From the NCBI GenBank assembly GCA_038496445.1, contig JALMLS010000589.1:178938-242937 (forward strand): 64,000 nt of DNA, read 5' to 3'. The notes beneath the pieces were generated by a model. That model worked only from the letters and a program-made list of their open reading frames with translations, did no database searches and was not told the DNA's origin. Below, piece by piece: positions 35,928 to 61,102 of the stretch (position 1 is its first letter; every line of letters starts with the position of its first letter). Position numbers and translations under genes: made by a program. Source of the DNA: Trichosphaerium sp. ATCC 40318 (lineage: Eukaryota; Protista; Tubulinea).

Positions 35928-37069
35928 TTAACCCCTTGAACCTGAGAGTAGAGCTCGACGAATATCACTATCAACAGGTATTCTAACAATCAAGTAAGAA
36001 TTAGTTTCGAAAAGTGAATGAAGTAAGTACGTATTGCATGGAATAGCTCCACCTACATCTATTCCTAGAATATTTTGAGGATCAGGTATTTGTGCAAAGC
36101 CTGTTGGTGTGAATGCAAGTGTATTTGTGTTCAAAAAGAAAGAGCCTCCTATGTCTGAACCACAAACAACAAGAATGCGTGTGCTGTCAAACACAGCGAA
36201 CCCTGCTTTTTATTAGCAACTTCATTTTCTTAGTTTCCTTCCTACCTTTAATTCTATCACATGGAGACATGAATGCGGACCCAACCATTGAACATGTATC
36301 AGGTGGGCTTGCTGGCAAGTTCATAAGCTCAATACCTTCAAATTCACATCCCACGTATATTGTTGATCCAATGACAATAGCTGGAAGGTAAAACAATAGT
36401 TAACAAAAGGAATTAAGTAGTATGATCGTACTTGTTGCAGGTGCTGGAGGCGCTGTTACAACAGACAAACACACAGCAGTGGGTTCACAAGGTGACATGA
36501 AAGAATTATTGCGATACTAAAGTCTACAGTACCATACAAGGTACCTGTTATAGGATCAACGTTCATGTTTGTGTTTGTACCAGCATTATTCATTTCATTG
36601 CATGTTTAGAAATAATCACGTTGTACTATTATTGTTTTCTTGTTTTTTATTTTGACGTACAGGAGAGCATCCTTGAGGTCCAAAGATTTGTACCATACCG
36701 CTTCTGTCACTTTCAATCTCGAAAGATACAGCGAGATTTCCATCTTGTAAATAAGCTAAAATCTTTGATTACTCACTTTTAGTTGTTGCGATCAAAAGAA
36801 AAAAACAGCAGTAAAACTCTCAAAACCAGATATGTACTCATTGCAGTGATCGCCGCTCCATCAAATGAGCAAGCTATGAAAGAAAATAAATAGAGAAGAA
36901 AAAAGAAGATCAGGACGAACTTACGCTCGCCAATAAAGTCTCCTGACTCCAACACAAACCGTTGGAAGCTTGTTCCGTATCTTACTGCTGCTAGGGTTCT
37001 TATTTGAGCTCTTGACACAGATAAAATAAACGAAAGTAATAAACAAAGGAGAAGTGGTCGCAGGTACAT
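35928..37069 (-). CDS. Secreted Cys-rich family member B (7 exons; 1-nt frameshift near 36508)
   Basis: MYLRPLLLCLLLSFILSVSRAQ signal peptide, FQRFVLESG, NTNMNVDPITGTLYGT, AVFDSTRILVVCG, VDSDIRRALLSGSRG*. Confidence 0.75.
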
Positions 37070-37187
37070 TGTTAACAAGCTTTTTGAGCTTTTGAACACA
37101 ACGCACATTTTCATCAAATCTGTTGATATCACCCGCTGGTTACTAGCTTGGGATAATTACGAATAAGATAATTCTAAAGAAATAAAA

Positions 37188-37615
37188 TACCAAAGCTAGT
37201 CCTTCATTTAATATATCGAGACTCTGCGGGCTACGAGATATCTCGTGGCTTTCACGATGCCAGCTCTAGAAATATAAGTAAATAGATCACCTGTCAGTTG
37301 TTCACTTTGACATCATACGTACCTTATTGCGAAGTCCAGTCTCTCAACCTGTGCATAAGGAAAAGAAAACAGACTGTCCCAGCTTAATATAACTTGTTCA
37401 GTGAAGTTCTAAAATAACAAGATATCTTGTTCGCTTGCAGTTAAATGCTTTACACCAAAAAGAAAAAGAAAAACAATGAGTGTCATATTGTAGTATGCGG
37501 AAAAGAAGGTTCTGGTAAATCTGTCATCACAATACGCTTCAGACACGATTTTTTTGTTGAAGAGTACCATAAAACCGCGTAGAATACTTCAAATAACGTT
37601 ATAATAGATACGATC
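37188..37615 (+). pseudogene. Truncated duplicate of the 5' flank, exon 1 and intron 1 of the Ras-like gene at 48820-49651
   Basis: Matches the reverse complement of ~49480-49887 (IVVCGKEGSGKSVITIRF..VEE). Homology ends at TACGATC, 37615. Confidence 0.8.
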
Positions 37616-38519
37616 TTTTGTAAGCAGTTCACAATTTCAAAAAAAGTCTAGCACACCTCAAAAACGTTATTTTTGGCCAAATTTTGGGTATGCTCCAGAG
37701 CATATTTGTGTTTACAATTTAGTAGAACCAGAACTTGCTGGTAATTAATAGTGTACTTCAATCAACTATTTCATTGAATCTAAAAACGAGTTTTTTCTGC
37801 CTGGGATCATATTCTTCTCCTCTAACACCACCATGTTTTGCAGGTAATTCTTTTACAAAATAGTGATTAAGGATTACATTCTGTCGTTTCTTGCATTTTT
37901 TATCACTTTCAGTGTTCCACATAAAGCTATCATCACCTGTCTCTATACCTGATTGCTGTAAATTGGTCATTCTTTTGAACAATCATTCTAACCCACAGAT
38001 ATCTTTTTCAAATCTGTCCTTTTGGTGGCAGGTGCTTAATAAACCATTGTGTACCTATACCCAGTTATAAAGTATTTGATAATTTAGGTATCAAAACACG
38101 GAGGTTACTTTTTCATAGAAGTTGATGAACATAATATGTAAATGAAAATGTCAAAAAACTCACTCTTGCTTGGTACTTTATTGAATCAGAGGTCCACAAA
38201 GCTTGCTGTAGTTATGTTTTACCACTACAGAAGTGTTAGAGACAGATCTTACTTTTTACATGGGGAGATACTTCAGTACTTACCAAAACAATTTCTTTGA
38301 AACTATGCTGCTACAATTGTTTAACTATTGCTGAAAGTTATGCTGTATCATATACAGTGTGTACACCATTTAACCGCTTGTACACACTTGCCCTACATCG
38401 GTATTGGGGAATTCGATTTGACTACAATATTAACACAGCAAACCAACGTTTTAAGCGTTTTCTGAGTGGACACTTTACCTGTTTGACTAATTGTAGCTGA
38501 AATCTCGAATGTGACATTA

Positions 38520-39260
38520 CTGTCTGTATCATTCAAGTTTGCAACAGGTTTGGCAGAAGTATCAAAGTGTAAGATCTTGCAAGAACTAACAGATCTGTCA
38601 GATCTTGTCACTTTTGCTAGTTCTTGTAAGTTCTGGCAGATCTGTTAAAAACTTGAAGGTTCAGTGCAAGCAAATGCATCACATTCAACAACTCCAGTCT
38701 ATGTACCTTGCTTGCCGTGCTTATGTACCGTAAGGCAAGAAAAAAATACAATGTCAAAGTCATTCACCTAACAAGACTATTGCAGTATTTTGCGTAAGTG
38801 CTTGTAAATGCTACACTCACCAAAGAAGCGCCCAAAGGAGCCGAACAAGACCAAAAGGTACGAATTACTTGTTATCTTTTGCCTAACGTACTACGCTGCC
38901 ACGCGCTAGTGCTGACACAAGGGAAAAAACCGTAAAGATTAATTCCAAAAGCGCTCAAAGTATCTCTGGAGGTGATATTGTGGTACGGACGCCATGTAAT
39001 GTAATTGTAAAATAAAATAAATGTTGGTTTGGGTTTTTAAAATCACGTGGCCAGTGCAAATTCATGATTTTTCCGCCCAGCAAGCCTCCAATAACGTGAA
39101 TCACATTTCAAACATTGGGTCTGCTAGTTCTAGCAAAATTGTCAGTTCTGTAAGAACTAACAGAAGTTGCAAGATCTGTCAGATCTGACTAAACTCGAAA
39201 ATCAAAAGTCACAAACAGCAAAAAGTTGCAAAGATTAGCAAACTTGAATGATACGGACAA
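38520..39260. mobile_element. Non-autonomous TIR element, family B (Tc1/mariner-like by its TA flanks)
   Basis: 22-nt TIR TGTCTGTATCATTCAAGTTTGC (38521) / GCAAACTTGAATGATACGGACA (39238-39259) with one mismatch. TA at 38518-38519 and 39261-39262. Subterminal AGATCT/AGAACT repeats at both ends. Confidence 0.8.
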
Positions 39261-39444
39261 TATCTCTATTCGCATGTAAAGTAAATGTTTGATACATAAA
39301 CAAAGTCACAAGTAAGAGATGTGTCAGTGTTCAGTCAGAACTTTGTTTGGTTCGCTCTTAATTAAACAAAATGGGCAATTATTTGTATTGTACAACGTTA
39401 ACAGATTGACAATTTCCTTCATACAAAGCAATGATGTTAAAACA

Positions 39445-40691
39445 TTATTTGCCACCATAACCCCTTGAACCTGAAAGTAAAGCTATGCGTGCAGCACTAT
39501 CAACTTGATGTCTAGAAAAAAGTAAGATTAAGAAGGAGAAACGCCATGAGGTACCTTTGACATAGAGTCCCACCTACAGCTAACCCGACAATAAAGTTAG
39601 GGTCAGGTATTGGTGCAAATCCTGTTGGTGTGAAAGAGTTATCATTTATATTGTACAAGTAAGAGTTTCCCATTTCTGCTCCCCCACAAACAACGAGGAT
39701 TCGTCTACTGTCAAATACTGTGAACCCTTGCGTATTGTTAAATAACTCGTAGGTTTCTTTGGAAGTACCTTTAATAGTGGTACATGGAGAGCTGGTTGGT
39801 GATCCACTCATTTCACACGTGTCAGGCGGATTTACTGGCAATTCCATACGCTCGATCATGCCATTGTTTGCCATGTACGCTACCGGTCCAATGACAACGG
39901 CTAGATGTGATGTCAGCCAGAAAAGCTTTAGTTGAAATAATCTTACTTGTTGATGGTGTAGGAGGCCCTGTTACGATACCTGAACACACAGGAGTGGGTG
40001 CACAAGGTGATGCAAAAGAGTTAATTGCAACACTAAAGTCCAAAGTACCATACAAGGTACCCGTTATAGGATCAATATTCATGTTTGTGTTCGTCCCAAG
40101 CATTGCCATTTCATCGCAACTTTCCAGCTAAATCAAGTGTTAAACTGATGGTTTATTGAATCTAATAGTGACGTACAGGAACACATCCTTCAGGTCCAAA
40201 GGTTATTACCCTGCCATCTCTGGGTGAAAGATCATTCTCATAGCCTACCATCAGATTTCCATTCTGCAAATATGCTAAATCAGAAAAAAGTGAGTAGGGC
40301 TTTCTAAGCATCTGATGCTTCTTCTATTGCTAACTTGTAGACCACGTTGAAACCTGACTAAGAGGTAGCAAACGAGTGTTACACTAAACCCTCCTAGCGG
40401 CCTTAAACACAACAAAAGAAGCTTGCTTTATTTATGTGATGTACGTACTCATAGAGGCAATATTCTCGCTATCAATTGTACAAGCTATTAAAAGGTATGA
40501 GGTAGTAAAACCAAAGTATAGAAGAAAACAATTTAACACGTACAATCGCTTATAAGTGTTCCTGACTCTAGCTCAAATCGTTGAAATCTCCTACCTTGAC
40601 TATAGCCTACAACTGCAAGAGTTCTTTGAGCTCTTAGCACGTGGATAATAGATGAAAACAATAATATGAGGAGAAGTGGGTGACCATACAT
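39445..40691 (-). CDS. Secreted Cys-rich family member C
   Basis: MYGHPLLLILLFSSIIHVLRAQ, FQRFELESG, NTNMNIDPITGTLYGT, FTVFDSRRILVVCG, VDSAARIALLSGSRGYGGK*. Confidence 0.85.
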
Positions 40692-41139
40692 TGTTGTGGG
40701 CTTTTGAAAACTACAAAACTTGCTCACAATACACATTTTCATAAGTCAACTTGCCAAATTATTTGTGGCATTTTTCGCCATTAATGACGGTACAAATAGT
40801 ATTTTACCGGCGTGTGATAAGCGGGGTAGTTTGTTACTTAAGGTAGTTTCCAGTGTAACAACTTCGGTGAGTAGCAGTTATAGAAAAAGTTACAAACACT
40901 ATCGTGAATGTTCGAGTATGATTAAGGAGGTTCACGTTCACTTATTTTTTTTTGAGATTCCACGTGCTACGAGATATCTCGTTGCTTTTGAGAAGGTGAT
41001 ACGTGAATCTATCACCCACTTCTCTACAATCACGTAATTTACAACTCTAGCAAGTGTGCTTGAAGAATCATTAGAAATTACATCCTAGGATTGAGAAAGG
41101 ATAGGTGCTAACACTCACTTTAGTTTTTGCAAATGAAGG

Positions 41140-41375
41140 GCCTATAAAAAAAACAACTCAAAACCAGGTATGTATCATTGCAGTCGCTCCATCAAAGCTA
41201 TGAAAGAAAAGGCTTGGATAATTAAATAATAAATAACTACACGCGAATAGTATTTAGAAAACACCAAAGCTAGTCCTTCATTTAATATATCGAGACTCTA
41301 CGGGCTACGAGATATCTCGTGGCTTTCACGATGCCAGCTCTAGAAATATATGTTGTTAATCAGGATTCTACTTGC
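41140..41375. pseudogene. Microdeletion-riddled relic of 36800-37275 (member B exon 2 plus upstream element)
   Basis: AAAACCAGGTATGTATCATTGCAGTCGCTCCATCAAAGCTATGAAAGAAAA is 36822-36887 with several small deletions, followed by the 85-nt element. Confidence 0.65.
41262..41343. promoter_or_regulatory. ~85-nt conserved intergenic element with a palindromic core (copies at 37188-37269, 41262-41343 and inverted at 49812-49887)
   Basis: ACCAAAGCTAGTCCTTCATTTAATATATCGAGACTCTrCGGGCTACGAGATATCTCGTGGCTTTCACGATGCCAGCTCTAG. Each copy lies 5' of genes. A regulatory role is inferred, not shown. Confidence 0.45.
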
Positions 41376-41537
41376 AAGCTTCAAGGTGGTAAATAATCTA
41401 GAACCTTTAACTACCTACTGTTATTGAATAAGCGAGATTTGATGCAAATGTGCATTATGTGACAGATAGCTCCTGAAAGATTGAATGAAAATGTGCATTG
41501 CTGCTAAGATTGTATCAGCACAAAAATCCCAATAACA

Positions 41538-42771
41538 ATGTATCTCCGGCCGCTTCTCCTTTGTTTCTTGCTTTCTTCTATTGTATTAATATCAAGAGCT
41601 CAAATTGGACGCCTTGCAGCTGTAGGATACAGTGGCGGAACGTTTCAACGTTTTGCGTTAGAGTCTGGTATCTTAATTGGCGGTTGTACGTTCGTTCTTT
41701 ATTTATCTATCATCTCATGCCTTTAATAGCATGCTCACTTGGTAATAATGTGGCGATTGCTTCAATGAGTACATAAAGCACAAAAACAGCTAGTTTTGAG
41801 TGAGCAAGCCCTTTTTATGCATTCACGTTAGGCTTAGCAAAAACAATCTGATTTTTGTTGTGAAACATTTCGGAAACACGTTTTTACGTTTACGCTAAAA
41901 CTCGCCGCAACTAACAATTTTAGCTTATTTACCAGATGGAAATCTCGCTGTAGCTGTTGAGCGTGAGGTTGACAGAAATGGCATGGTACTAACATACGGC
42001 CCCGAAGGTTGTGTTCCCGTACGTGGTGTTTGTCAGTTAATAAATACTTTCAAGAAAACTTTTAATAACACGTGATTGTTCTAGATTGAAACATGTGATG
42101 AAACAAATATGGCTGGGACAAATACAAACATGAATATTGATCCTATAACGGGTACCTTGTATGGTACTTTAGATAACAGTGTTGCAGTTAATTCTTTTGC
42201 ATCACCTTGTGCACCCACTCCTGTGTGTTCGAGTATTGTAACTGGACCTCCTACACCAGCAACAAGTAAGATTATCTACAAAGCAAACATTCTTACCACC
42301 TCCAGCTATTGTCATTGGCTCAACGATATACGTGGCAAGCATATTCGAAGGTATTGAGCGTATGGACTTGCCAGCAAGCCCACCTGATACATGTTCAATG
42401 GTTGGGGCCACAATCACACCACCATGTGGAAGAGTTTTAGGTACACACATTAAGAATATGCAGTTGTTTATAAAAGCAGGTTTCACTGTGTTTGACAGCA
42501 CACGCATTCTTGTTGTTTGTGCGGAAGCAGGCTCTTACTTTTTGAACACAAATACACAACGCTTCACGCCAACAGGCTTTGTAGCAATACCAACTGCATT
42601 CGATATAGTTGGATTAGCTGTAGGCGGAGATTTATGTCAAAGGTACTTCAATAGCTTCTTTTTACTTAGTTGTTTGATTTCCGTTCTTACTTGTTTTTTA
42701 GAAGTGCCTTTGATAGTGATATGCGTAAAGCTCTACTTTCAGGTTCGAGTGGTTATGGTGGCGGTAAATAA
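41538..42771 (+). CDS. Secreted Cys-rich family member D
   Basis: MYLRPLLLCFLLSSIVLISRAQ, same 7-exon structure, ends FDSDMRKALLSGSSGYGGGK*. Confidence 0.85.
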
Positions 42772-43016
42772 TATCTCGATCACTGATGTACAGGTTAATA
42801 TACCTTAGCACTACAAGTACTTTTCTTCTTTGTTCCAGCTAGTTGTGTTAATTGAGCATGTGAAAGTCAGTTTTGTTTGGCAAAGTAGTAAGGTTATCTT
42901 TGAAGCCGGCTGTAAAAAAAACCTAAAATCCAAAAATCATTCCCAAAATATCGTTTTTCTTCTTGTAGAAAAACCACGTGGTTCCCTGGTCAATCACAGT
43001 TGTGCCGGCGAAAGTA

Positions 43017-43496
43017 TGTGGTTGTTTTCGAATAACAGATGAAGGTGTTAAACCCCTAGCTGGTGTTCATACAATTAGTCTATCATATACAAAAGTTACA
43101 GATACTGGTATTAAGGCTTTGGGTGGTGTTCACACTATTCGTCTCTGGTATTGCAATGTGACAGATGGTAGTATTAAATCACTGGCAGGCGTTCATACAA
43201 TTGACTTAAGTGATTGTACTAAGATAACAGATGATGGAATTAAAGTATTAGCTGGAGTTTACTCAATTAACTTGAAAGGCTGTACCCTTGTAACAGACAA
43301 AGGGGTTAAAGCTTTAGCTGGTGTTCATGAGATAGACGTGTCCTACTGTAATAATATTACAGATGATGGCATAAAGGCACTGGCGGGTGTATATGCAATC
43401 AATATAACGAGTTGTATGCTTGTTACAAAAAAAGGCATCAAGGCTTTAGGTGATGCACGAATAGTACGAAATTTGGGCGATTTATTAAACTACTAA
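43017..43496 (+). pseudogene. Headless LRR array (six to seven 21-22-aa Cys-containing modules), no F-box or clear ATG
   Basis: AGVHTISLSYTKVTDTGIKAL..AGVHTIDLSDCTKITDDGIKVL.. with the frame open to TAA and AATAAA after it. It could be a 3' exon. Confidence 0.6.
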
Positions 43497-43679
43497 CAAA
43501 AATAAAAGCAGTGTTACATGAATTTAAGTGTTTGTTGCGCACAGTATGTTAATTCACACGAGTACTAACCATACACTTTGCTGTGTCTTGAACTAAACCC
43601 TTGAATACCATTGGTGTAAAGAAATTGAACAACTTTAAAAACGAGAACCGGTGATTTGTTTCAAATTTAGGGATTGTAT

Positions 43680-43963
43680 TAATGCCCTTCCGTATCTCCA
43701 AAATGGTTTATTTTGTGCGGTACTGGCAACTGGTCACTCACAAATCCAAATCTTGACGGTTTACTTTGGCGGCCAAAAAAAGCGATATTTGTCACGTGTT
43801 CGTAAAACACAATATAAACCTACCGGCAGCTCAGCGATCTTTTTACTCATGAATATGTAAGGAAGTGGTCTTGACCGCCTTTTGACATAGCTGTAAGCTA
43901 GACTTCCTAAATACTGGCTGTATTTGAATATTCATAGTATTCATGAGTAACGGAAGGGCATTA
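43680..43963. mobile_element. Short diverged member of TIR family A
   Basis: 14-nt perfect TIR TAATGCCCTTCCGT / ACGGAAGGGCATTA. The right subterminal GGCTGTATTTGAATATTCA is shared with 31019-31037. TSD is only partial (GATTGTAT / TTGTGTAT). Confidence 0.75.
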
Positions 43964-44241
43964 TTGTGTATTCAGGAGAGGCGCAAGATATTGTGACTAA
44001 AACGTGGCAGAAAGTGAGTAGAGCTTTGATAAGAATAACAGATTGTATATTTGGAAGTATAGTCAAGAACTCACAAGATCGAATTCTAAGTTGTCCGATG
44101 GCTTTGTCTTGAATGTCTTACATGTATCAGATGCAATACCGGTTATTGATATTAGTACTACACTAACTACAAGTCACGAGAATCTAACAGGAAACTTGTT
44201 GACCTTTAAGATTTATTGTTTTAAAAAACGTTGTACGCAAT

Positions 44242-45417
44242 ATGAGCGATAGTAATACAAGTGAATCTTCCTTAAACGAACGCAAACAAGACTCAACATT
44301 GCTTTGTTTACCACTAGAGATCCAACATATGATTTTAAACACAGATTATCACGCTTTTATCAATTGGCCTCTTCTTTGTTTTCAAGCGGCAGAAACGAGC
44401 AGGTTTAACGCAAATATGGACAAACACGGAACGTTTAGAAAATTCATGGCCGATGGAGCGAAACGCGTTGAAACCAAGTTCAAAAATGGTACCACAGCTG
44501 GTCGGGAGCGTAAATGGCACCCAAACGGCCAATTAGCGGTCGAACGGTACAACAGACATGGTAAAAGAAGAAACAAAGGCTATCTCTATCACTACCGTAA
44601 ATGGTATCCATCTGGAGCTAAATACAAGGAAGGGTTTTATAAACAGGGCGTAAAACATGGCAGATTCTCGGTTTTTCAAGCAAATGGTTCATTGAGAACA
44701 ACAGGAGTTTACAACAAAGGTAGAAAGAATGGTGAATTTTTGACTTACTCAGTGCGTGATGGACAGATTCTAGAGTCTTGCTTTTACAAACAAGGTCAAA
44801 AAGACGGGTTATTGACCGTTTATAGCCAAGAATTCATTGATAGTTATCAAATGAAGGAAGGAAGGATTTGTGGAGAGTGCAAGAAATTTAGAAAAAAAAC
44901 CAATCAACTTGTTGTCCATTGTTTTGCGATGAACACAGGTTGTTGCCATGAAAATGTCCATAGATTTCAACTATACCATGGAGAGTATAAGAAATATGAT
45001 GATTCAGGTAATCTAAGAAAGCATTGTTGGTTTAACAAGGGTGAGCCTGAAGGAGACTATATTTTATACAGGTATGGCTTAATGAAAGTCAAGTATTCCT
45101 ACAAGTGTTTTGTTGATACACCTGGTTATATACCACGTGCAAAAAATCATCGTAAACCATACTATAATAGGACTACTAGTGTTAGACATGGCGAGTATAA
45201 GCTTTGGTATGAAAATGGTCAACTTCAAGAACACTGCTTTTTTAAAGACAGATTAAAGCATGGAGAGTATAAAGTTTGGTATCGTAATGGGCAGTTACAA
45301 ATCCATTGTTTCTATGTTAAAGGTATAGAAAAAGGTGAATATAAAAGTTGGAACGTGGATGGTGTATTAGATCAACATAGGCTTTCTTTGAACTTGGAAA
45401 ATGTAACAAAAAGGTAA
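44242..45417 (+). CDS. F-box-like + MORN-variant (YwqK-type) repeat protein, intronless, 391 aa
   Basis: LLCLPLEIQHMIL..WPLL and repeats such as HGEYKLWYENGQLQEHCFFKD and HGEYKVWYRNGQLQIHCFYVKG. Confidence 0.88.
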   Translation: MSDSNTSESSLNERKQDSTLLCLPLEIQHMILNTDYHAFINWPLLCFQAAETSRFNANMDKHGTFRKFMADGAKRVETKFKNGTTAGRERKWHPNGQLAVERYNRHGKRRNKGYLYHYRKWYPSGAKYKEGFYKQGVKHGRFSVFQANGSLRTTGVYNKGRKNGEFLTYSVRDGQILESCFYKQGQKDGLLTVYSQEFIDSYQMKEGRICGECKKFRKKTNQLVVHCFAMNTGCCHENVHRFQLYHGEYKKYDDSGNLRKHCWFNKGEPEGDYILYRYGLMKVKYSYKCFVDTPGYIPRAKNHRKPYYNRTTSVRHGEYKLWYENGQLQEHCFFKDRLKHGEYKVWYRNGQLQIHCFYVKGIEKGEYKSWNVDGVLDQHRLSLNLENVTKR

Positions 45418-46486
45418 ATTTTGTTATGGAAAGCAAGAACTGACGTTTTATCCCACGTGCAGAGCCATTATAGAATCTTGTATCAAATAGTACATTACCT
45501 TGTGTTTTGTTGTACATGTTGTGCTTAGTTTTAGTCAATGGTAAAAGTAAGGATTACCTTAAATCAACACGTGAAGAGGTAAAAGAAAAATTGTCGTGGC
45601 CTTGGAGTTGGAACATCGATTTCAAACTTCGCATTAATTATCCAAGAAAAAAATACTTCTCATCAAGATGTAGTAGCCAGCTAAAACACCTAACCGGTTA
45701 TAGCTGTCAAACTTATTAGGTGGAGTGTGACTTGTCGCAAATCATTGAAACAGTTTTCTTGGAACGTTTGGAGTGTATCTCTGAAGGTTTACCAAATAGA
45801 GTAAGTCAACCTTTAACACTCGAGTCTCGTACTTCCTTGTTTGTGTTTTGGGAATTGAGAGCCAAAGGTTGCCTCACGTGTTGATTTGTAGCTGTTACAA
45901 TGGTTTGTGAGTAATTAAAGAGAGCTTGATCAAAGTTTTTGCCTGTACTTGGTTTATTAATTGTTGTTCTCCTCTAATTTCATTGTATACTTCCGCATTG
46001 GTGTTGGAGAAATATCTTAGCACGTGCTCAAGTGAAACACCTGAGAGATTCAGTTATTGGAAAGGTGGCTTACTTGTATAAGCATGGATGGAGAAATATT
46101 GCCTATTCAGCTGAGGATTTTCTGTATCCTGAGTTACTCGTTCATTAAACGCGATAAAACAAAAGAATAAAATAAGAAACGACGTTCCACAATAAGTTAA
46201 ACTAAACAGAATCTAGCTTTAGTTATGTGGCCTGCTCTAAAGCTATTATTTTTGTACCTTCTCCAGACTACTAAATATAAAGGTATCAATGCAAATATAA
46301 CCAATTTATCTAACTGCGTAAACGCTGGCTCAGTCGTGAAAATAACAGTGCAAAAAAAAAAAACAGTTCAAGTCTGTCAGAAATCTGCTTGTGTAATCTC
46401 CTCTGAGTTACATCTCTTAATTGACGTTGTAGTAGCCATTCCTGATGGTCAGTCAGGTGAGTGTTATTCTATGCACTGGTTGACAC

Positions 46487-46720
46487 CCTCAACAAAATAG
46501 AATTCAGCAAAAAAAAGTAGAATAAAAACACAACATGGCTGTTGACTATCACGGGATGTAGCTTTACACCACGTGATTAATGTAGGATAGGTTAAATTAG
46601 ATAGTGTTTGATGACCAATAATTAAGAAACTTGCCGGCACGTTATAGTCAACAAAAATGTTGTGTTTTTTCACATTCTGTCTACTTTTTTTTTTTGTGCT
46701 AATTTCTATTTTTGTTGAGG
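46487..46720. mobile_element. Foldback/MITE-like element ending 18 nt upstream of the Ras ATG
   Basis: Arms of ~70-85 nt: CCTCAACAAAATAGAATTCAGC..AAAAACACAACAT..GTTGACTAT versus the reverse complement of 46641-46720. CAC flanks both sides (46484-46486 and 46721-46723). Confidence 0.65.
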
Positions 46721-46738
46721 CACCACAAGAGCCACAAA

Positions 46739-49651: not shown

Positions 49652-49944
49652 TTAACAGCCTGGTAAAAATAAGAAAGTTATTTTAGAAATTCACTGATTA
49701 AGCAGGGTTAGTCTGTATTCCTGAAACACGTAGCGAGACTGAACTTTACAATAAAGTGCATATGATATCAAAGTGAACAACCGACAGGTAGAATCCTGGT
49801 TTATTTACAACCTATAGCTGGCATCGCGAAAGCCAATCTCGTAGCCCGTAGAGTCTCGATAAATTAAATGAAGGACTAGCTTTGGTATAAACCTACCACA
49901 TTACCAGTAAACTCCAACATCTTACCATCACAAGACACAATATT

Positions 49945-51126
49945 ATGCTTTCCGCTTCAAAGGGTTGTAAAATCAACAATAATACTTGTGAGAGTTTGCT
50001 TCAGCTTCCTACAGAGATATTAGCATATATCTTGTGTCAAACAACCAAATCACGATTTGCAGCTTGTCAAACCTGTCGTTTTATTGCTTCTATCATTCAT
50101 GATATTATTGGCTACCACGCTATTAGACTTACAACGTTAACTCAATCAAAATCAGCTGTAAAACATCCTGGTATTGTGAAATGCACAAAAGTTGCCCTTA
50201 GCGGACATGTTTTTGATGACAATGTTATCAAACAATTTGCTGGTGTTCATACTATTTATCTTGATGATGACACTTCAGTAACTGATGTAGGAGTTAAAGC
50301 ACTTACTGGTGTACATACTATTAATCTTGATCGTACTTCAGTAACAGATGAAGGAGTTAAAGCACTTGCTGGCGTCCATACTATTAACCTTAGTCACACT
50401 TTAGTAACTGATGAAGGCGTCAAAGCACTTACTGGTGTACATACTATTAATCTTGATCGTACTTCAGTAACTGATGAAGGCGTCAAAGCACTTGCTGGAG
50501 TTCATACTATTTTCCTCAATCACACTTCAGTAACTGATGAAGGCGTCAAAGCACTTGCTGGAGTTCATACTATTCACCTGAATAGCACTTCAGTAACTGA
50601 TGAAGGTGTCAAAGCACTTGTTGGAGTTCATAGCATTTACCTTGGTAGAACTTCAATAACTGATGAAGGAGTTAAAGCACTTGCTGGCGTCCATAATATT
50701 GACCTTAGTTACACTTCAGTAACTGATGAAGGCGTTAAAATACTTGCTGGGGTTCATACTATTTTCCTTGACATTACTTCAGTAACTGATGAAGGAATTA
50801 AAGCACTTGCTGGCGTCCATTATATTGACCTTAGTGACACTTCAGTAACTGATGAAGGAGTTAGAGCACTTGCTGGAGTTCATGAGATTTACCTTAACGA
50901 CACTTCAGTAACTGATGAAGGCGTTAAAGCACTTGCTGGTGTCCATACTATTGGTCTTGATGACACTTCAGTAACTGATGAAGGTGTTAGAGCACTTGCT
51001 GGAGTTCATGAGATTTACCTTAACAACACTTCAGTAACTGATGAAGGTATTAAAGCACTAAAAGGCGCCCATTATATTGAAGTGCATGATGCAAAAATCA
51101 TAAGGCATACAAGCTCTTTGTACTAA
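49945..51126 (+). CDS. F-box + 13 LRR modules (63 nt / 21 aa; first module 22 aa) + cap, intact, intronless
   Basis: LLQLPTEILAYILCQ F-box and xGVHxIxLxxTSVTDEGVKAL x13. Confidence 0.93.
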   Translation: MLSASKGCKINNNTCESLLQLPTEILAYILCQTTKSRFAACQTCRFIASIIHDIIGYHAIRLTTLTQSKSAVKHPGIVKCTKVALSGHVFDDNVIKQFAGVHTIYLDDDTSVTDVGVKALTGVHTINLDRTSVTDEGVKALAGVHTINLSHTLVTDEGVKALTGVHTINLDRTSVTDEGVKALAGVHTIFLNHTSVTDEGVKALAGVHTIHLNSTSVTDEGVKALVGVHSIYLGRTSITDEGVKALAGVHNIDLSYTSVTDEGVKILAGVHTIFLDITSVTDEGIKALAGVHYIDLSDTSVTDEGVRALAGVHEIYLNDTSVTDEGVKALAGVHTIGLDDTSVTDEGVRALAGVHEIYLNNTSVTDEGIKALKGAHYIEVHDAKIIRHTSSLY

Positions 51127-51535
51127 GAAACAAGTAATAAACCAGTACTGAAATGACTCACAAAAAGTGTAACTGCAATTAAATACCTACCCTCGCTAGC
51201 AATAGAATTCAACACTCAGAATGTTATTTATCAATACAGAGTAGACATGATTCAATATAAAATAGATCTTTAGTGATTTTCGTCTAGAGAGGGTGAGGAA
51301 AATCTAGAAGTTTTCTAGAAGTGTGATAGAAGTGTTTTTTCTCCCCAACCATAAAATAGAGTCCTCAGTTGCCGGACACAGGCTATTACAATCCGGCTGC
51401 ACAGAGTACAGGCAAAGGTATAGGAGCAATCTACAATAATTGATAGTAATCAAAATACAGAGCACACAGTACATGGTATTTTAATGATAGATGTTGTAGT
51501 CAAGTTTTATTGAATCCGGTACTTTAGGTAGAATA

Positions 51536-52867
51536 TTATTTGCCATAACCAGTTGAACCTGAAAGTAAAGCTCTACGCATATCACTATCAATCTGACTTC
51601 TAGGAAAACAAACAAGTAAGAATGTGATGAAAAGAAAGAACACAAGCATTAAAAAGTACGGTTTGCATGGTGAAATAGACAAGCCAACAATATCATCTGG
51701 AGTTGGTATCTGAGCAAATCCACTTGCTGTCAAAGCTTCAGTATTTGTATTGTACATATATGACTCTCCCATTTCTTCTGATCCACAAACAACTAAGATA
51801 TGTGTACTATCGTACACAGCCAATCCTAGTAAACAATGTTATTTTTTTCTAGAACTGTTGTTTACTTATCTTGATTTACCTTTAATGTTTGTACATGGTG
51901 TTGCGATTGCTGATCCCAAAGATGTGCACCGGCCAGGTGGATTTTCTGGTAATCTAGAACGCACAATCATACCGCCATATCCCATGTGTGATATTAGACC
52001 AATTACAACAACTAAAAGATAACAAGTAAACAAAAATCAACAGCTGTTAATAACCGTACTTGGTGCTGCAGTTGGGGGGGATGTTACTAAACGCGCACAT
52101 ACACGAGTACCTTCACATGGTGATGTGAAAGAATTGACGGCAACGCTGTTGTCTATGGTACCATACAGGGTACCCGTTATAGGATCGATATTCATGTTTG
52201 TGTTTGGGCCAATCATACCAGCTTCAGCGCATTCGTCTATCTTCAATATTGCGTTAGAAATAAAAGTACTATCTTAATCTTTATCGTACAGGAGTGCAAC
52301 TTCCAGGTGTCAAAGTTTGTACTATACCAATACCAGGTTCAACTTGGTAAGCTACAATAATATTGCCATTTTCTAGATGCGCTAAACGTAAAACAATGAG
52401 GTTGAAGGGTAACAAAAGGAATATACAGATTTTTTAAAAGCGCCAAAACTAGCCGGAAAAACTTCAATACTTCAAAAGTTCAAATCGTTCAAATTGTCTA
52501 CTTTTTTCCTACAGAATTTCATTTCTCTCAAAATGTATTTTCAAGAAGAAAAAGTTGGATTTGATGCATAAAAAACTGTAGGAGGTTTTTGAATTTCATA
52601 AAAAAATCTTGGTTAATACGCACTCGCAGAAGTAAGGAAGCTATTCGTGGAAACACAGGCTATATTACATTGTAAATATAGAAGAAGAAGAATAAGTGAC
52701 AACTTACGAGAGCTAATAAGTGCTCCAGACTCCAACTCAAATCGTTGAAGAGTACCGGTACCAGAACCAGAGTCTACGTAGTAGGCTACAACAGCTGCAG
52801 TTTGAGCTTTTGATAGTAATACAAGAGATGAAACCAATAAACAAAGGAGAAGTGGTCGTAGATACAT
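51536..52867 (-). CDS. Secreted Cys-rich family member E
   Basis: MYLRPLLLCLLVSSLVLLSKAQ, LQRFELESG, NTNMNIDPITGTLYGT, ends IDSDMRRALLSGSTGYGK*. Confidence 0.85.
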
Positions 52868-53618
52868 TGTTGTTGTTGTTATTGGGGTTTTTGTGCTGAT
52901 ACAATCGTAACCAGTAATGCACATTTCCATTTAATCTTTCAGATCACCATCTTGAGATAGCTCCCCAAAGAAACAGTTAATCCAAGACGTAAAGGTGAAC
53001 GTATGGCTGATTGAAGTTCTGGTTTGAGCTGTTTTTTCGAGACTCCGCAACTCCGTGTCACTGTGTGATCTCAGGGGTTATACACTTTTACCGAAATGAT
53101 GCCGACAACCAACCGAAAAAAAAAGGTGTTGTTAGATACTAATGAAGCGATTAAATGGCTCTGTTCGCTTTTGGTCGGGCTCTTTGCTATGCTCAGGACA
53201 AAATCAGACCTTCGCTCACTTATTGTCAGCAACAGTGAGCCAAAAAGTTGGAATTCCAATAATTTGAATACAAGTTTTCGGTTTCGTTTCAGCGAGCTTT
53301 CGGCGTTGTTGCCGAAATATCGGTAGATTAACTGACCCTCAAGGCAACTTCCTAATAGGGTCACTGATAAACGGTTATGCCCATTGAGCAGGTCAAGCAA
53401 CCTTAAATAGTTCAAGGCAAAACAAAATGTAAAAGAAAGAACATTGGTTGCAACCAAGGTCAAGTATAGAGATAGATACTCCAGTTAGTGCCCTCCATTC
53501 TGTGTTGTGCTGTAAGAGTGTAAGAATCCAAATAAAATGCTTTACACTTCATCTGTCACATTCTTACACATCTGTCATTAAGTAAATCGAAATTTGGTAT
53601 GGCACAATATGAGAGCTA

Positions 53619-54689
53619 ATATCGTGTATCCGTTGACCCAAGCAACCAAAAAAACTCTCTGTATGTAAAAGTAATAAAATTATTCGCAGTGATTATTGTG
53701 TGGTACACGTAGCTTATGGTAGTGCGTTAATGGTAGTGAACAAACTTAAAATAATAAAATTCTGCGTCTTAATAAATAAAGGAAGTCTCTCGCCTTGCAA
53801 TACAATAATGAGCATACCAGCTACACACACATCCGAACTACGTATGAATTAAACAACAACGAACTCGTTTTTGTTAGAAACAACAACAAAGTCTTATATC
53901 ACTTGTTTTTAGTCTCCGACGCGTCATTATGCTTGAAAAAAGATCATAAGGAATTTTCAAAGGAAAGTAAAAGCCCTCCACCATATTACTTTATAATTGA
54001 TCTTGGCGAAGCAAGCACAAAGGATGTAAAGGTACGAAGATGACGAACACGTGATTTTTTAGGATTTTTAAAATTATCACGTGTTTAAAGAAAATGAGCA
54101 CAAAACGTTTCTGTTTTTTCCGTTTGTTGGATAAACATACTAACACCACTTGCTTTGTCTTAGATAAGCGTTCTAGACCCTAAACGAAACGAAGTGAAGA
54201 ATACAGTCAAGTTTTCAATCCAAGGCGTCAAAAGATCGTTCCTATGCGCGTACGAGCCTAAGATTGCTGGAGAACACGAAGTTAATATAAAGTACAGTGG
54301 TACTGCACTTGAGTCAATTTCGGTTCCTGTAAGACTGGGTACGCATCATTTTATGCCCTTACGCTATAATTCTTGTTACGTTTTCGTTTTTTTGTTTTCT
54401 CCTGAATATTTTAAAACGCTATCTTGGCCTGCACGCCTATGTACGGGTATTTAACTAAATATTGTTTTGTTGAATAGAAGCGGATGTCGATGATAAAGGG
54501 CGTGTAAAATATCCAAGGTTTCCTGTTGAGATAGAAAGTGCGTACCTTGCTGTATCGTATGACACAAAGCGTTATAAAGATGATGACGAAGAAGAAGAAA
54601 TAGGTACGGATGAGTTTATTATTAATGTTTCCTGTTCTTACAACGTCTATAGTGCCTAGGAAACAATGTAGTATACAATAAATAAATAA
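53619..54689 (+). CDS. Small protein with one filamin-type Ig repeat, multi-exon; ends uncertain
   Basis: VSDASLC..YYFIIDL..KDVK|ISVLDP..CAYEPKIAGEHEVNIKYSGTALES matches the filamin pattern Y-x-P-x3-G-x-H-x-V-x-I-x-Y-x-G. Confidence 0.6.
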
Positions 54690-54768
54690 TGTCAAAAAAA
54701 AAAACCAAATATTTGGAAACACGTGTTAGCTCCAACTTGCATAGGTAATCACCTATGATTAGTCTGTA

Positions 54769-55419
54769 GTGTATATGTTAGTTAATTGTGTAGACTTAAG
54801 TACCTATATTTATGCTACAGCTGTTGTACATGATAGCTTGAACTTTAACTTTTTTTTATCCAACGAAGATACTGATTTGTTGCAAGCTTGTTTCAGAGTA
54901 CTCTCCTGCAAGGATTCTCTTAAAGCAAATTACTGTCGCAGTTTTGATAAAATTGATCAGTATGAGTGTAACCATGAACGTATGAGTGAGATTTTTTCAA
55001 AGTTATAATATCCTATTGTTGAGGATAACGTAATTTCTTTCCATTTTTATACAACACTCATATTGCCACACCCATCGCTGAGGCGGGCAGCGATTAATAA
55101 TATGAAGCGTCACTTTTTAGAAATGACAATATGCAATTTTGATAAATACAACAGCAGTTACCTCATCAATCTGCGTGAGTACTCACAGAACTTCACTACA
55201 TTTGACAACTTTATTACTATGTATGATAGGCTGACATTGACAAGATTGACAAGAAACAGATTGGCCAAAATTGGTCCTACCATGAACCAGCATTGAGAAG
55301 TCCTTGATGTACTGTACTTGAAGTACTATTGGTCTTGGGTGTCAATGACAGTTGATCCTTGTAAATATGGTACCACATGTTTGAATCTAAACCGGCGAGG
55401 AAAGTTTAGAGAGGTGTAG
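54769..55419 (+). pseudogene. Decayed intronless ORF of unknown family
   Basis: The ORFs at 54769 and 55063 share one frame, interrupted only by TAA (55006) and TGA (55294). Confidence 0.4.
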
Positions 55420-55813
55420 CATCACTGCTACATAGACACTTGTATTGTTTGTATCATCTGCTGAATCTGGATACCCGACTTGAGAATGGCTCAATTGAGT
55501 ATGGGTTCTAAAATATTCTTTGTACCTGCCAAGCGCTAGTGTGTTTCCATTGTATTAAATTTGATGCGATGAAAAGCAATCATAGACATTGTTAGACATT
55601 TAGGGTAAATAAGTGAACTCGAGCTAAACGTGAGACGTAACTCGCCTTGTCACGAAAAATTAACTGAACTTCAAGCGCTCATACATTCACGTTTACACCT
55701 CAAATTATAAGCCGTTGTCTTTGGAGCTATCTCAAGTGATGATGGTGATCTGAAAGATTGAATGGAATTGTGCATTGCGGTTAAGATTGTATCAGCACAA
55801 AAATCCAATAACA

Positions 55814-57077
55814 ATGTATCTACGCCCACTTCTCCTTTGTTTATTGCTTTCATCTCTCGTATTAATAACAAGAGCTCAAACTAGAGCGGTTGTAGCTTAC
55901 TACGTTGAACCAGCAACAACTGGTACTATTCATCGCTTTGAGTTGGAATCTGGAACGCGTCTTAGCAGTACGTTTGTATAATATCTTGTATTTATCTCAA
56001 CTTTACAAGCTTGCTTCTACCCAGATGAGTACCTCACTTCAGTAGGTACGTAACTTATTGCGATAACCTACCTTCGACGGTTTTTATTAAGTTGAATATG
56101 CTTGCCTACTTGATACTACCAGACCACGTGATCAACGTCATATTTTATATTCATGTTTAACCTCCAAGCACAAGAGCGCTGTTTATACAGAAGAATGCTA
56201 TTTTTTATCTCATTTCTTACTTTAGCGTATCTACAAAACGGGAATATTGCTGTTGCTTTTCAGAATATTATGAGCGATGTTGGTTTCGTACGAAGTTTGA
56301 GACCTGGAAGTTGTACTCCGGTACGTTGAGAATATATTTATTAAATTTAACAGCACTCTATACGGTAGGTTGACAGATGTGATGAAATGAGTACATCTAA
56401 CCCAAACACAAACATGAATGTCGATCCTATAACTGGTACCCTGTACGGTACCATAGACACCAGTGTTGCTGTCAATTCTTTTACGTCACTGTGTGAAGGT
56501 ACCCTTGTATGTTCGTCTATGGTATCAGGACCTCCTAGCGCAGCTCCAAGTACGACTAGTAAACATGTAGCTTTATGTTGACTTGATTTTTCTTCTAGCT
56601 ATTGTAATTGGTTCTATATCATACATTGCAAGTGGTAGTGATATTGTGCGTATGAGACTACCAATAAATCCGCCTGATGTGTGTTCGATGCTTGGATCAC
56701 CGATCACAACATCATGTACAAACATTAAAGGTAAATCAAGACAAGTAAACAGTTCTAGAAAAAAATAACATTGTTTACTAGGGTTGGCTGTTTATGACAG
56801 TACACATATCTTAGTTGTTTGTGGATCAGAAGAAATGGGAGAGTCATATATGTACAATACAAATACTGAAGCTTTGACAGCAAGTGGATTTGCTCAGATA
56901 CCAACTCCAGACGATATTGTTGGCTTGTCTATTTCACCATGCAAACCGTACTTTTTAATACTTGTGTTCTTTCTTTTCATCGCATTCTTACTTGTTTGTT
57001 TTTCTAGAAGTCATATTGATAGTGATATGCGTAGAGCTTTACTTTCAGGTTCAAGTGGTTATGGCGGCGGTAAATAA
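55814..57077 (+). CDS. Secreted Cys-rich family member F
   Basis: MYLRPLLLCLLLSSLVLITRAQ, 7 exons, ends IDSDMRRALLSGSSGYGGGK*. Confidence 0.85.
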
Positions 57078-57539
57078 TGACTACCTAACTCTATGAGCAA
57101 TGTTTCAATAAACAATAGACATTTAATGAGTTGGAAACTGGCCTTCGCACATCTACGCTACATAGAATTGACACAAGATTCACAGATAATTAACAAAACT
57201 ATGTTTCCCCCATTGTTACGATAACTACAACACGAAAGTAGTTCAATTCAAGTCCCAATCTAAAAAATGTCTGGTGGACCTGTGGTATGAGAAGTAGTGC
57301 ACTACTGGCTAAACATGTACGTACCTCGGTCTTAGAGATAGCACCGCATAGTTTATATCATAGTTTGTAAAAGTGACTATCCGGAGTTACACAAAATTGG
57401 TATATATAACAATTTAATATTCACGCTATTGTAGCGTTTGTAGAGCAAAGCAGTGGGTGATATCAGCAGATTTGATAATAAAATGTGCATGTGTGTCAGA
57501 TTCTAACAGATGTTTCAAACCTCCCAAATAACAACAACA

Positions 57540-58807
57540 ATGTATCCTCGACCACTCCTCCTTTGTTTATTGGTTTCATCTTTCGTATATGTATCAAGAG
57601 CTCAAAATACATTAGCAGCCGTAGGATACGAAGTGGGTGGTTCCAGGTTTTTCCAACGCTTTGAGTTGGAGTCTGGAACGCTTATAGGCGATCGTAAGTT
57701 CTTACAAACTTTCCTCTCTTTTAAACTTTATTCTCATACCCTGTAGCTTGTGCGCTTGAGCGCGACTATATTGCTTCAATGAGTGCGTCTCAATACAATA
57801 AAACACGTTTTAAGATTTCGGAGTAATTCAAAGCAAAACGACTTCTATTGTTTATAGAACTGAGTTTGCGTTTAGTCAAAACTTCTCTCTGTTCTTTGTT
57901 TATTTCTTTTTAGCGTTTCTACAAAATGGAAATCTTGCTATGGGTCTTGAGGGTGAATTTGATACGAGAGACGGTATGGTACAAACTTATGGACCTGAAC
58001 CAGGTTGCGTTGCCGTACGTCATATTTAAAGAAACAATTTTCTGGAAACTTGAAAACGTTTTGTAACACGTGTATTTCTAGATTGAGAGTTGTACCGAAA
58101 TGGCTACTGCTGCCACAAATACAAACATGAATGTTGATCCTGTAACGGGTACCTTGTATGGTACTTTGGACAATAGTGTCTCTGTCAATTCTTTTGCGTC
58201 ACCTTGTGAACCCACTCCTGTGTGTGCGGAAATTGTAACAGGACCTCCAACAGTCGCAACAAGTAAGACTATTTTCACATTTTGATTTCAATTCTGAACT
58301 AACTATTCTTTTCTTCCAGCTATTGTCATTGGGACGACAGTGTATATGGCAGCTCCATTCGTTAATGAGATTGTTGCTATGCTACTGCCAGACACACCAC
58401 CTGGTATGTGTTCAATGGTGGGTGATGCAGTCGCATCGCCATGTACCAGCATTAAAGGTAAAATCTCAAACTACAAGATAAAAAGCATTAACAATAATCA
58501 AGGGTTCACTGTATTTGACAGTACACATATCCTTGTTGTTTGCGGATCACAAGAAATGGGAGACTCTTACTTGTTCAATATAAATGATGCTAGTTTCGCA
58601 GCAAGCGGATTCGCTCAGATACCTGATCCTGACAGAATTGTTGGGTTAGCTGTAGTAGGTGGAGCAAGTGGAGGTGGAGATACATGTCAAACGTACTCAC
58701 ATTGCGTTTTCTTGCTGTCACCATTCTTATTTTTTTCTAGAAATGAAGTTGACAGTGCTGCGCGTATAGCTCTGCTTTCAGGTTCAAGTGGTTACGATAG
58801 TAAATAA
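57540..58807 (+). CDS. Secreted Cys-rich family member G
   Basis: MYPRPLLLCLLVSSFVYVSRAQ, 7 exons, ends VDSAARIALLSGSSGYDSK*. Confidence 0.85.
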
Positions 58808-59119
58808 TGAACGGTTGAAGGAACATTACTATGTAAAACTTAATATACTCAAGCGTTTGTTGAATTTCAACAATAATCCTTCGGTTGCTTTATTTCTAAA
58901 AGGTGAGAAACACCTTTCTGTCTAATGATGTATGTATTTGTCTTAAATATGCTACGGTATGCTGAGCTTCCAAATCATGGATACAATTGCGCGTAGTTGC
59001 ATTACGTAATTGCACCAAAAGGTTCAAAAGTGAATACATCTGAACAACTTTTATTCCATTAACTTCCTTTTCCACAAATGGTTTTTTTTTTTGGACACAT
59101 TCACGCTTTGTTTTAGTAT

Positions 59120-59345
59120 GAGTGATGACGGTGATCTTAAAGATTATTGGAAATATGCATTATCAGCTAAGGTTGTTTCTCGCTTTCATCTCTTGGATTA
59201 ATATCAAGCTCGAACTAGAGCCGTTGTAGCTTATTACGTTGAACCCCAAACTGGTACTATTCATCGCTTTGAGTTGGAGTCTGGAACCGTCTTAGCAGTA
59301 CGTTTTTATTATATATTGTACTTTACAAGCCTGTCCCGTTACGTG
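59120..59345 (+). pseudogene. Deleted relic (H) of the 5' end of member F
   Basis: Aligns with 55735-56010 (RAVVAYYVEP.TGTIHRFELESG). The ATG and part of the signal peptide are deleted. Confidence 0.75.
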
Positions 59346-59838
59346 ATCAACCAAACTTTGTTTTTAGTTGTTTTGTTTTCCTTCTCTTCAGTCAAGATTG
59401 TGTCATATATCTAGGGTTATAAGACGTTGTATTAGACAAGGTAAGGAGAATTCTAATCTACTACAAACTTATTTACAATGTTTAAGGGAACTTTGTTATC
59501 TACAGAATTGATAAAAACTCACAGATAAATAACAAAACTCTATAATGTGTCAGATATGGTTCTCCCCATTGTTACGACATTTACAACATATAAAAGTATT
59601 GTTCTTCAAGTCTCTAAATAATATCTGGCTAAGTAGTGCACTACTGGCTAAACCGTATAGTTTTACATCATAGTTTGTAAAAGTGACTATCCGGAGTTAC
59701 ACAAAATTGGTATATAACAATTTAATATTCACGCTATTGTAGCGTTTGTAGAGCAAAGCAGTGGTGATATCAGCAGATTTGATAATAAAATGTGTGTCAG
59801 ACACAGGTTCATCCAAAACATCCTAAATAACAACAACA

Positions 59839-61102
59839 ATGTATCTTCGACCACTCCTCCTTTGTTTATTGGTTTCATCTTTCGTATACGTATCAAGAGC
59901 TCAACATACATTAGCAGCTGTTGGATACCACATCGGATACCTCAAAGATGATTTTTTCCAACGCTTTGAGTTGGAGTCTGGAGATCTTATAGGCGATCGT
60001 AAGTTCGTAAACATGTATCTTTCTCTTTTAAACTGCTATTCTCATACGTTGTAGCTTGTTCTATAGATTCCGAGTTTATTGCTTCAATGAGTGCGTCCCA
60101 ATACAATAAAACACGTTTTAAGATTTTCAGAAGTTAATTCAAAGCAAAACGACTTTGTATTGTTTTTTCGAACTGAGTTTGCGTTAGTCGCATCTATATC
60201 TCTTTGTTTATTTCTTTTTAGCGTTTCTACAAAATGGAAATCTTGCTGTATCTTTCGAGGATGGAAATGAAAGAAGCGGTATGATACAAACTTATGGACC
60301 TGAAGCAGGTTGCGTTGCCGTACGTCATATTTAAAGAAATAATTTTCTGGAAACTTGAACACGTTTCGTAACACGTGTATTTCTAGATTGAGAGTTGTAC
60401 TGAAATGGCTACTGCTGCCACAAATACAAACATGAATGTTGATCCTGTAACGGGTACCTTGTATGGTACTTTGGACTTTAGCGTTGATGTCAATTCTTTT
60501 GTGTCACCTTGTGAACCCACTCCTGTGTGTACGGAAATAACAACAGGACCCCCAACAGTCGCAACAAGTAAGACTATTTTCACACTTAGATTTCAATTCT
60601 GAACTAACTATTCTTTTCTTCCAGCTATTGTCATTGGGACGACAGTGTATATGGCAGACACAAACAACAATGAGATTGTTTTTATGAGCCTGCCAGACAC
60701 ACCACCTGGTATGTGTTCAATGGTGGGATCACCAGTCGCATCGCCATGTACCAACATTAAAGGTAAAATCTCAAACTACAAAATACAACATTAACAATAA
60801 TCAAGGGTTCACTGTATTTGACAGCACGCGCATCCTTGTTGTTTGCGGTTCAGAAGAAATGGGAGCATCTTACTTGTTCAATATAAATGACAACTCTTTC
60901 CCACCAAGCGGATTCGCTCAGATACCTGATCCTGACAATATTGTTGGATTAGCTGTAGGTGGAGCTATATGTCAAAGGTACTCTCATGGCGTTTCTCCTT
61001 TTTTTTAAACTATATTCTTACTTTGTTTCTAGAAGTGAAGTTGATAGTGCTGCACGTAAAGCTCTGCTTTCAGGTTCAAGTGGCTATGGTGATAGTAAAT
61101 AA
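59839..61102 (+). CDS. Secreted Cys-rich family member I (recent tandem duplicate of G)
   Basis: MYLRPLLLCLLVSSFVYVSRAQ. Introns and upstream flank are near-identical to G. Ends VDSAARKALLSGSSGYGDSK*. Confidence 0.85.

Follow-up and report, generated by a model that had tools for sequence, protein, structure and literature searches.

A lineage-restricted family of predicted small secreted beta-propellers with alternating variable and conserved loops in Trichosphaerium sp. ATCC 40318

We analysed a 64,000-nt stretch of the genome of the amoeba Trichosphaerium sp. ATCC 40318 (GenBank assembly GCA_038496445.1, contig JALMLS010000589.1, here C87; the stretch is C87:178938-242937 and is called the window below). 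It is eukaryotic DNA with a guanine-cytosine content of ~37%, and between 35.9 and 61.1 kb it carries seven full-length copies, on both strands, of a gene family encoding cysteine-rich proteins with a predicted signal peptide. An earlier interpretation made from the letters alone (the sequence-only reading) had reported seven full copies and four relics of a family that it did not recognise. It also guessed at a small beta-propeller and took the variable loops to be complementarity-determining-region-like (CDR-like) parts of a diversified extracellular recognition set. Here we describe the genes, their transcripts and relatives, the predicted fold, and the distribution and evolution of the variation.

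Gene models and transcripts

Copies were located by a motif scan, by self-BLAST with one copy, and by MAFFT alignment of the seven genomic copies. Six of the seven (B-G) are intact and one (A) is broken, so that the earlier count of full copies holds for length and falls to six for intact genes. Self-BLAST and the genomic alignment agree with the sequence-only reading that all seven share the same seven-exon layout; the GT-AG sites lie at homologous positions, with donors mostly GTAAGT or GTACGT and acceptors AG. The models of B-G translate into six intact proteins of 275-288 aa, and the gene models reproduce exactly every motif and loop string (loop 1, mini-exon 2, and loop 3) quoted in that reading. 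In copy A the acceptor of exon 4 reads CTAA, not CTAG, and a 1-bp deletion in the same exon shifts the frame. Relics in the window were sought by tblastn. The copies and relics are as follows.

35928..37069 (-): copy A, full-length pseudogene with an earlier stop
39445..40691 (-): copy B, intact, 7 exons, 277 aa; exons at 40691-40544, 40484-40449, 40274-40177, 40127-39947, 39900-39769, 39726-39555, and 39511-39445
41538..42771 (+): copy C, intact, 7 exons, 276 aa
51536..52867 (-): copy D, intact, 7 exons, 276 aa; stretch from intron 5 to intron 6 converted with copy E
55814..57077 (+): copy E, intact, 7 exons, 277 aa; six introns confirmed by RNA
57540..58807 (+): copy F, intact, 7 exons, 288 aa; intron 6 confirmed by RNA; exons at 57540-57693, 57747-57782, 57914-58014, 58082-58262, 58320-58457, 58503-58692, and 58741-58807
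59839..61102 (+): copy G, intact, 7 exons, 284 aa; equals database protein P0001; messenger RNA contig L001 runs across 59712-61233
35182..35379 (-): B-like relic of the 3' part, comprising exon 7, intron 6, and the end of exon 6, found by tblastn
59205..59336 (+): E-like relic of exon 1, situated between F and G, found by motif scan and tblastn
61579..61794 (+): D-like relic of exons 3-4 that contains stops, located downstream of copy G, found by motif scan and tblastn

Where four relics had been claimed earlier, tblastn thus recovered three in range; a further small fragment lies outside it, at 21030-21107 (-). This 79-bp fragment, 36 kb away, is 97.5% identical to the 3' half of copy F intron 1 and the entire mini-exon 2, and the similarity stops exactly at the 3' boundary of mini-exon 2. 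It could be either a capture from a partly processed transcript or a relic of conversion.

The genes of this family are real, and copies E, F, and G are transcribed and spliced, because a public transcript matches the exons of copy G and RNA contigs carry GT..AG joints. The transcript, a 1113-nt intron-less contig (L001), maps onto copy G as exactly the seven predicted exons and encodes P0001 (284 aa, JGI), which is identical to the copy G model. P0001 and a second database protein, P0002, came from a word search whose query was a part of copy F free of stops (exons 5-7, with two introns in frame). RNA contigs from four public runs, representing three studies, were compared with window positions 55700-61250. 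Six of six introns of copy G were present as GT..AG joints, each in two to four of the four runs; for copy E, six of six were present across two runs of one sample; and for copy F, intron 6 was seen as a GT..AG joint in one run. A template-switch adaptor joined at 59825 marks a 5' end, which lies 14 nt upstream of the copy G start codon.

Transcripts of J- and K-like copies, which lie on another contig (see below), were found only in public transcript assemblies. P0003 (80 aa, MMETSP) was considered as a foreign relative and rejected, being a spliced K-like transcript of the same organism. P0002 was likewise rejected as a further paralog: it consists of exons 1-2 of copy G followed by exons 3-7 of copy J (contig C109), and the switch from G to J falls in a stretch common to both copies. 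It is probably a chimera of transcript assembly and possibly a recombinant allele of the sequenced strain.

Family members across the genome

When the entire assembly was searched, first with P0001 and afterwards with a profile of the family, only ten intact genes and three pseudogenes were identified as members. Six of the intact genes, B-G, lie in the window; of the other four, H and I are farther along C87, J is on C109, and L is on C63. Of the pseudogenes, A belongs to the window, K to C109, and M to C544. One region, C109:1-7996 (L036), repeats window positions 55985-64000 with 15 substitutions and 60 indel columns, mostly intergenic, and the exons of F and G are the same in both. We take the repeat for assembly redundancy, which would inflate raw whole-genome counts of family copies by three and would place copy J ~5 kb beyond copy G. 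The region was rejected as a second allele for a McDonald-Kreitman-type test, given this redundancy and the identity of the F and G exons.

An alignment of the upstream regions revealed a motif, ATG[AG]AA[AT]TGTG[CT][AG]T (ATGAAAATGTGCAT), ~45-55 nt upstream of the start codon in essentially all members of the family, copies on other contigs included. RNA 5' ends fall ~14 nt before the ATG. All exact matches within the window precede family members, and the motif is likely to be a family-specific promoter element. Its occurrences, with variants before F and G, are:

55762-55775 (+): upstream motif
41485-41498 (+): upstream motif
52917-52930 (-): upstream motif
40729-40742 (-): upstream motif
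37101-37114 (-): upstream motif

Sequence relatives and predicted fold

The family is lineage-restricted as far as these searches reach, without relatives outside this organism's own transcripts, and the earlier failure to recognise it was well founded. No Pfam profile, that of Tachylectin included, matched single exons or P0001/P0002, even at E up to 10. PF14339 (DUF4394) had no match in the organism's own genome or in P0001/P0002, and PF21959 (DUF6923) had one sub-threshold match in the genome, at an unrelated locus, and none at family loci. The SGL, lactonase, and NHL enzymes gave no Pfam profile match, and similarity to them is at the level of the fold only. Searches of 5.8 and 1.84 billion proteins yielded only own-organism transcripts that we accepted as relatives. 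In the second of these sets (cluster representatives, searched with phmmer), the matches were P0001, P0003, and five giant repeat proteins. The giant filamin-repeat and WD40-repeat matches of P0001 (E 1e-9 to 6e-4) were rejected as sums of many weak repeats; their folds are unrelated to one another, and BLASTP gave just 18-27 bits per stretch. Two further word searches, one with the family profile, returned own-organism transcripts only, and phmmer and profile searches of PDB sequences found no match.

The precursor is ~280 aa long. A signal peptide, as claimed earlier, is predicted from the sequence; its 22 residues would direct the precursor to the secretory pathway, leaving a mature part of ~255-266 aa. 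Across the ten intact proteins, nine cysteines are conserved in the mature part, which ends in a conserved C-terminal tail (DSxxRxALLSGSSGYG..K). As input for AlphaFold we aligned P0001, P0002, and the exon translations of the other paralogs, dropping by eye the pieces that MAFFT had misplaced; MAFFT placed exon-3 pieces onto exon 1. The AlphaFold2 model (predicted local distance difference test, pLDDT, 64.7; predicted template-modelling score, pTM, 0.60) shows a signal-peptide helix followed by a regular meander of ~19 strands as assigned by DSSP.

Structural comparisons of this model point to beta-propellers. The matches listed by Foldseek against the PDB were almost all of this fold (Kelch, YWTD, designed six-bladed, lactonase, and YVTN), with template-modelling (TM) scores of 0.45-0.50, probability 1.00, and at least 500 matches at E <= 0.001. 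VIA-align (48,161 chains) gave Z scores of 14.6 to the five-bladed SCAN apyrase, 12.4 to tachylectin-2 (1tl2; 212 of its 235 residues aligned with model residues 21-255), and 11-13 to Kelch, YWTD, NHL, and TolB propellers. In the Atlas fold search the best match was a DUF4394 cluster (TM 0.63, root-mean-square deviation 3.6 A over 225 residues), below the tool's confidence mark, and lactonases scored TM 0.55-0.59. The language-model neighbours were DUF6923, DUF4394, NHL, SGL, and phytase-like families, all in the six-bladed-propeller clan, at 0.86-0.89 with DUF6923 and DUF4394 on top (0.88-0.89), values that the tool itself rates as leads only. A literature search found no paper mentioning DUF4394.

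Taken together, a small secreted beta-propeller is moderately supported, and the earlier guess of this fold fits the AlphaFold model and all four kinds of comparison. There are probably five blades of ~47 residues: the protein has an internal repeat with a 47-residue offset, weak in itself (E = 0.11), and the alignment to tachylectin-2 covers nearly its full length.

Variation along the protein

The ten intact proteins are 51-82% identical, and the differences between them are concentrated in alternate loops. We numbered the loops by the strands of the AlphaFold model and calculated the mean column entropy of each. Loops 1, 3, 5, 7, and 9 have entropies of 1.37, 2.46, 2.28, 1.49, and 1.34, compared with 0.41, 0.28, 0.86, and 0.32 for loops 2, 4, 6, and 8. 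Simple combinatorics gives a chance of 1 in 126 that odd loops would take all five top places among nine values. Indels in the N-terminal half are confined to odd loops, except for a one-residue gap in loop 6. The even loops and inner strands are nearly invariant and include ELESG, LQNGN, GPxxGC, NTNMNxDPxTGTLYGT, and FDST. The constant framework interrupted by variable loops that had been read from the sequence is therefore confirmed, and across these nine loops its alternation follows the strand meander strictly. Because alternate loops of an antiparallel meander point to opposite sides, one face of the modelled propeller should carry the variable loops and the other the conserved ones.

Exchange among paralogs and selection

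Divergence between paralogs shifts abruptly along the gene. Between copies D and E it is 2-5% over intron 5 through intron 6 and 23-50% elsewhere; between F and G it is ~4% (7/169) in introns 3-5 and 21-37% in introns 1 and 6. The nearest paralog of a given copy varies by gene region, and may be a copy on another contig. Segment trees are mutually discordant, and tests of triplet site patterns reject homogeneity along the gene, both for F, G, and J (p = 2e-11) and for D, E, and K (p = 2e-9). From these four observations we conclude that gene conversion or recombination among paralogs is frequent and that each paralog is a mosaic. Exons 1-5 each hold at least one variable loop, so exchange of exon-sized segments can recombine loops.

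The exons of F and G that lie between introns 3-5 differ by 7-14%, with both synonymous and nonsynonymous divergence raised (proportion of synonymous differences, pS, 0.11-0.14). This excess over the introns could be due to constraint on short introns, micro-conversion, or selection.

Selection was examined on a nucleotide tree with our own code for the GY94 M0, M1a, and M2a models, which reproduced the log likelihood and omega (the ratio of nonsynonymous to synonymous rates, dN/dS) of IQ-TREE. Omegas for partitions of the protein were fitted separately. Pairwise gene-wide dN/dS ranges from 0.27 to 0.71, and the one-ratio omega is 0.396. Among the partitions, the odd loops have the highest omega (0.90), followed by the C-terminal half (0.43), the N-terminal strands (0.34), and the even loops (0.20). 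M1a assigns 59% of sites to omega 0.11 and 41% to omega 1; the low omega of the larger class indicates that the intact copies are under constraint.

Site models of the codeml type had been proposed in the sequence-only reading. For the whole protein, M2a fits better than M1a (likelihood-ratio statistic 19.1, p = 7e-5), with 2.4% of sites at omega 8.6. On gap-free columns the support weakens to p = 0.045, and with segment-specific trees the test is significant in exons 1-3 only (p = 0.001). Residue 82, in loop 3, is the only one whose posterior for positive selection exceeds 0.95. The comparison of M2a with M1a used branch lengths fixed up to a scale factor, and pervasive gene conversion makes it liberal. 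The models show a strongly constrained framework and near-neutral evolution at most loop sites, and they hint at positive selection locally.

Surroundings of the cluster

The neighbouring genes are unrelated to the family and encode MORN-repeat and F-box/LRR proteins. Three genes interspersed in the cluster, which encode F-box/LRR proteins and one MORN-repeat protein, are:

49945-51126 (+): interspersed gene
42978-43496 (+): interspersed gene
44242-45417 (+): interspersed gene

The F-box/LRR genes in the cluster had separately been flagged as hypervariable in the sequence-only reading. Elsewhere in the genome, a singleton gene at C121:29065-29896 (L038 5066-5897, (-)) has a signal-peptide-like start and family-like blade motifs, as in the stretch AQFDETRLLFLCG...YLFDTETMSF. 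With 36% identity to the family over 47 aa, it reads as a divergent relative; one of its exons gives a sub-threshold match to DUF4394 (E 0.09).

Interpretation

The reading that we favour, with a probability of roughly 0.5 for the statement as a whole, is that small secreted propellers with one variable and one conserved face make up a birth-and-death family restricted to this lineage and serve as an extracellular binding panel. We hold the structural and evolutionary parts of this statement with more confidence than the whole; secretion, the fold, the one-face geometry, and the binding role are parts that we infer. Tandem duplication and pseudogenisation make the family grow and decay, and gene conversion of exon-sized segments produces the mosaic paralogs. 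The variable face could give each paralog a separate target, through lectin-like or adhesin-like binding, and the conserved face and tail would perform a common job, such as ion or glycan binding, docking, or anchoring. The earlier proposal of a diversified extracellular recognition set is kept in this general form, and our results do not separate the lectin, opsonin, kin signal, and toxin that it had named. If a binding panel is the right reading, this would be a new protein family that diversifies an extracellular recognition surface in a free-living amoeba, with a small propeller scaffold, tandem duplication, and exon-scale gene conversion as its ingredients. The scaffold would be compact and disulfide-stabilised, with loops that tolerate changes in length.

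A bolder version would make the family a germline-encoded combinatorial recognition set, in which conversion among ~10 paralogs continually reshuffles the combinations of loops on the variable face. We consider this unlikely; if true, it would mean diversified secreted binders on a scaffold not known for that role.

Several observations weigh against a binding panel. Confidence in the structural model is no more than moderate: pLDDT is below 50 for residues 259-284 and for residues 105-157, which are the most conserved part, and a second AlphaFold run with the signal peptide removed was worse (pLDDT 49.4) and was not used. The number of blades and the placement of the variable loops on one face therefore rest on topology and not on coordinates. 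Moreover, the alternation is clear for the first nine loops only, and the C-terminal half is ambiguous. CDR-like diversifying selection on the loops was not demonstrated. The tree-wide omega of ~0.9 in the variable loops fits a plain lack of constraint, and neutral dN/dS, which the sequence-only reading had named as evidence against itself, is closely approached at most loop sites. In young pairs the ratio of nonsynonymous to synonymous differences in odd loops (pN/pS) is 1.1-1.6, never significantly above 1, and synonymous divergence is raised in those loops too. The positive selection in exons 1-3 comes down to about one codon, adjoining an indel, and recombination can give false positives in such tests. 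Should the loops be merely unconstrained, what is left is a well-documented orphan family, in which alternating variable and constant segments do not by themselves amount to CDR-like selection. Finally, the near-invariant face may hold an active site, and that would speak for an enzyme.

An enzyme is the main rival, ranked ahead of the two discussed below, although we think it doubtful. The protein would then be a secreted, metal-dependent hydrolase propeller like those of the lactonase, apyrase, glutaminyl-cyclase, or phytase-like kinds, with its active site in the invariant face and central channel. The loops of the far face would be unconstrained, and dosage or drift would account for the number of copies. 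Enzymes are indeed numerous among the closest folds and neighbours (SCAN apyrase at Z 14.6, glutaminyl cyclases, lactonase, SGL, NHL, and phytase-like proteins). Conservation of one face is extreme, the E, D, and N residues of ELESG, LQNGN, NTNMNxDP, and FDST being invariant, and near-neutral omega is what unconstrained loops would show. However, neither the Pfam nor the PDB sequence searches matched any enzyme family, the ten intact proteins share no conserved histidine, and the catalytic residues of those enzyme families could not be placed on the protein. Ten diverged intact paralogs with 59% of sites at omega 0.11 and local positive selection are also more typical of binding panels.

Near-neutral loops are also expected if the proteins are structural parts of a cell coat, glycocalyx, scales, or cyst wall, with a Gly/Ser/Tyr-rich tail that cross-links and exposed loops that drift. 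The invariant tail (ALLSGSSGYG..K) has Tyr and Lys residues that could be cross-linked, the odd number of conserved cysteines (nine) would leave one free for intermolecular bonds, and the common promoter motif suggests co-regulation. Single-domain propellers are not typical building blocks of a matrix, though, and the body of the protein lacks repeats and low complexity; we regard a structural role as improbable. Lowest in our ranking, and quite improbable, is that the proteins are effectors or toxins secreted against prey or competitors, or labels for self or kin recognition, with an arms race driving the change in loops. The family is an orphan that evolves fast and shows birth and death of copies, its omega across whole genes (0.4-0.7) is high, the site models detect positive selection in exons 1-3, and the cluster sits among other diversifying families (the F-box/LRR genes). 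Against this, a label between cells would call for a membrane anchor, and the proteins have no hydrophobic C-terminus; nor does Pfam report any toxin-like domain or match.

Comparison with known propellers

Among known systems, the lactonase, SGL, NHL, YWTD, and Kelch six-bladed propellers and the five-bladed SCAN apyrase share a toroidal all-beta fold with the model of the amoeba family. They differ in having no match to it at the sequence level, and their catalytic or ligand-binding residues are not identifiable in the amoeba proteins; the blade number of six- and seven-bladed families is probably unlike that of the amoeba family as well. The uncharacterised bacterial secreted propellers DUF4394 and DUF6923 (PF14339 and PF21959) resemble it in secretion signal and length, but are bacterial and give no Pfam match with P0001.

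Tachylectin-2, the five-bladed lectin of the horseshoe crab (PDB 1tl2), has no sequence similarity to the amoeba family, which is set apart by nine conserved cysteines, a conserved C-terminal tail, and blades that are highly diverged from one another. Like the protein predicted here, it is a secreted single-domain propeller of similar size; its repeat unit is ~47 residues, a length that the weak internal repeat of the amoeba protein also suggests. Coral homologues of tachylectin-2 are described in one report as highly diverse and under positive selection (PMC2880987).

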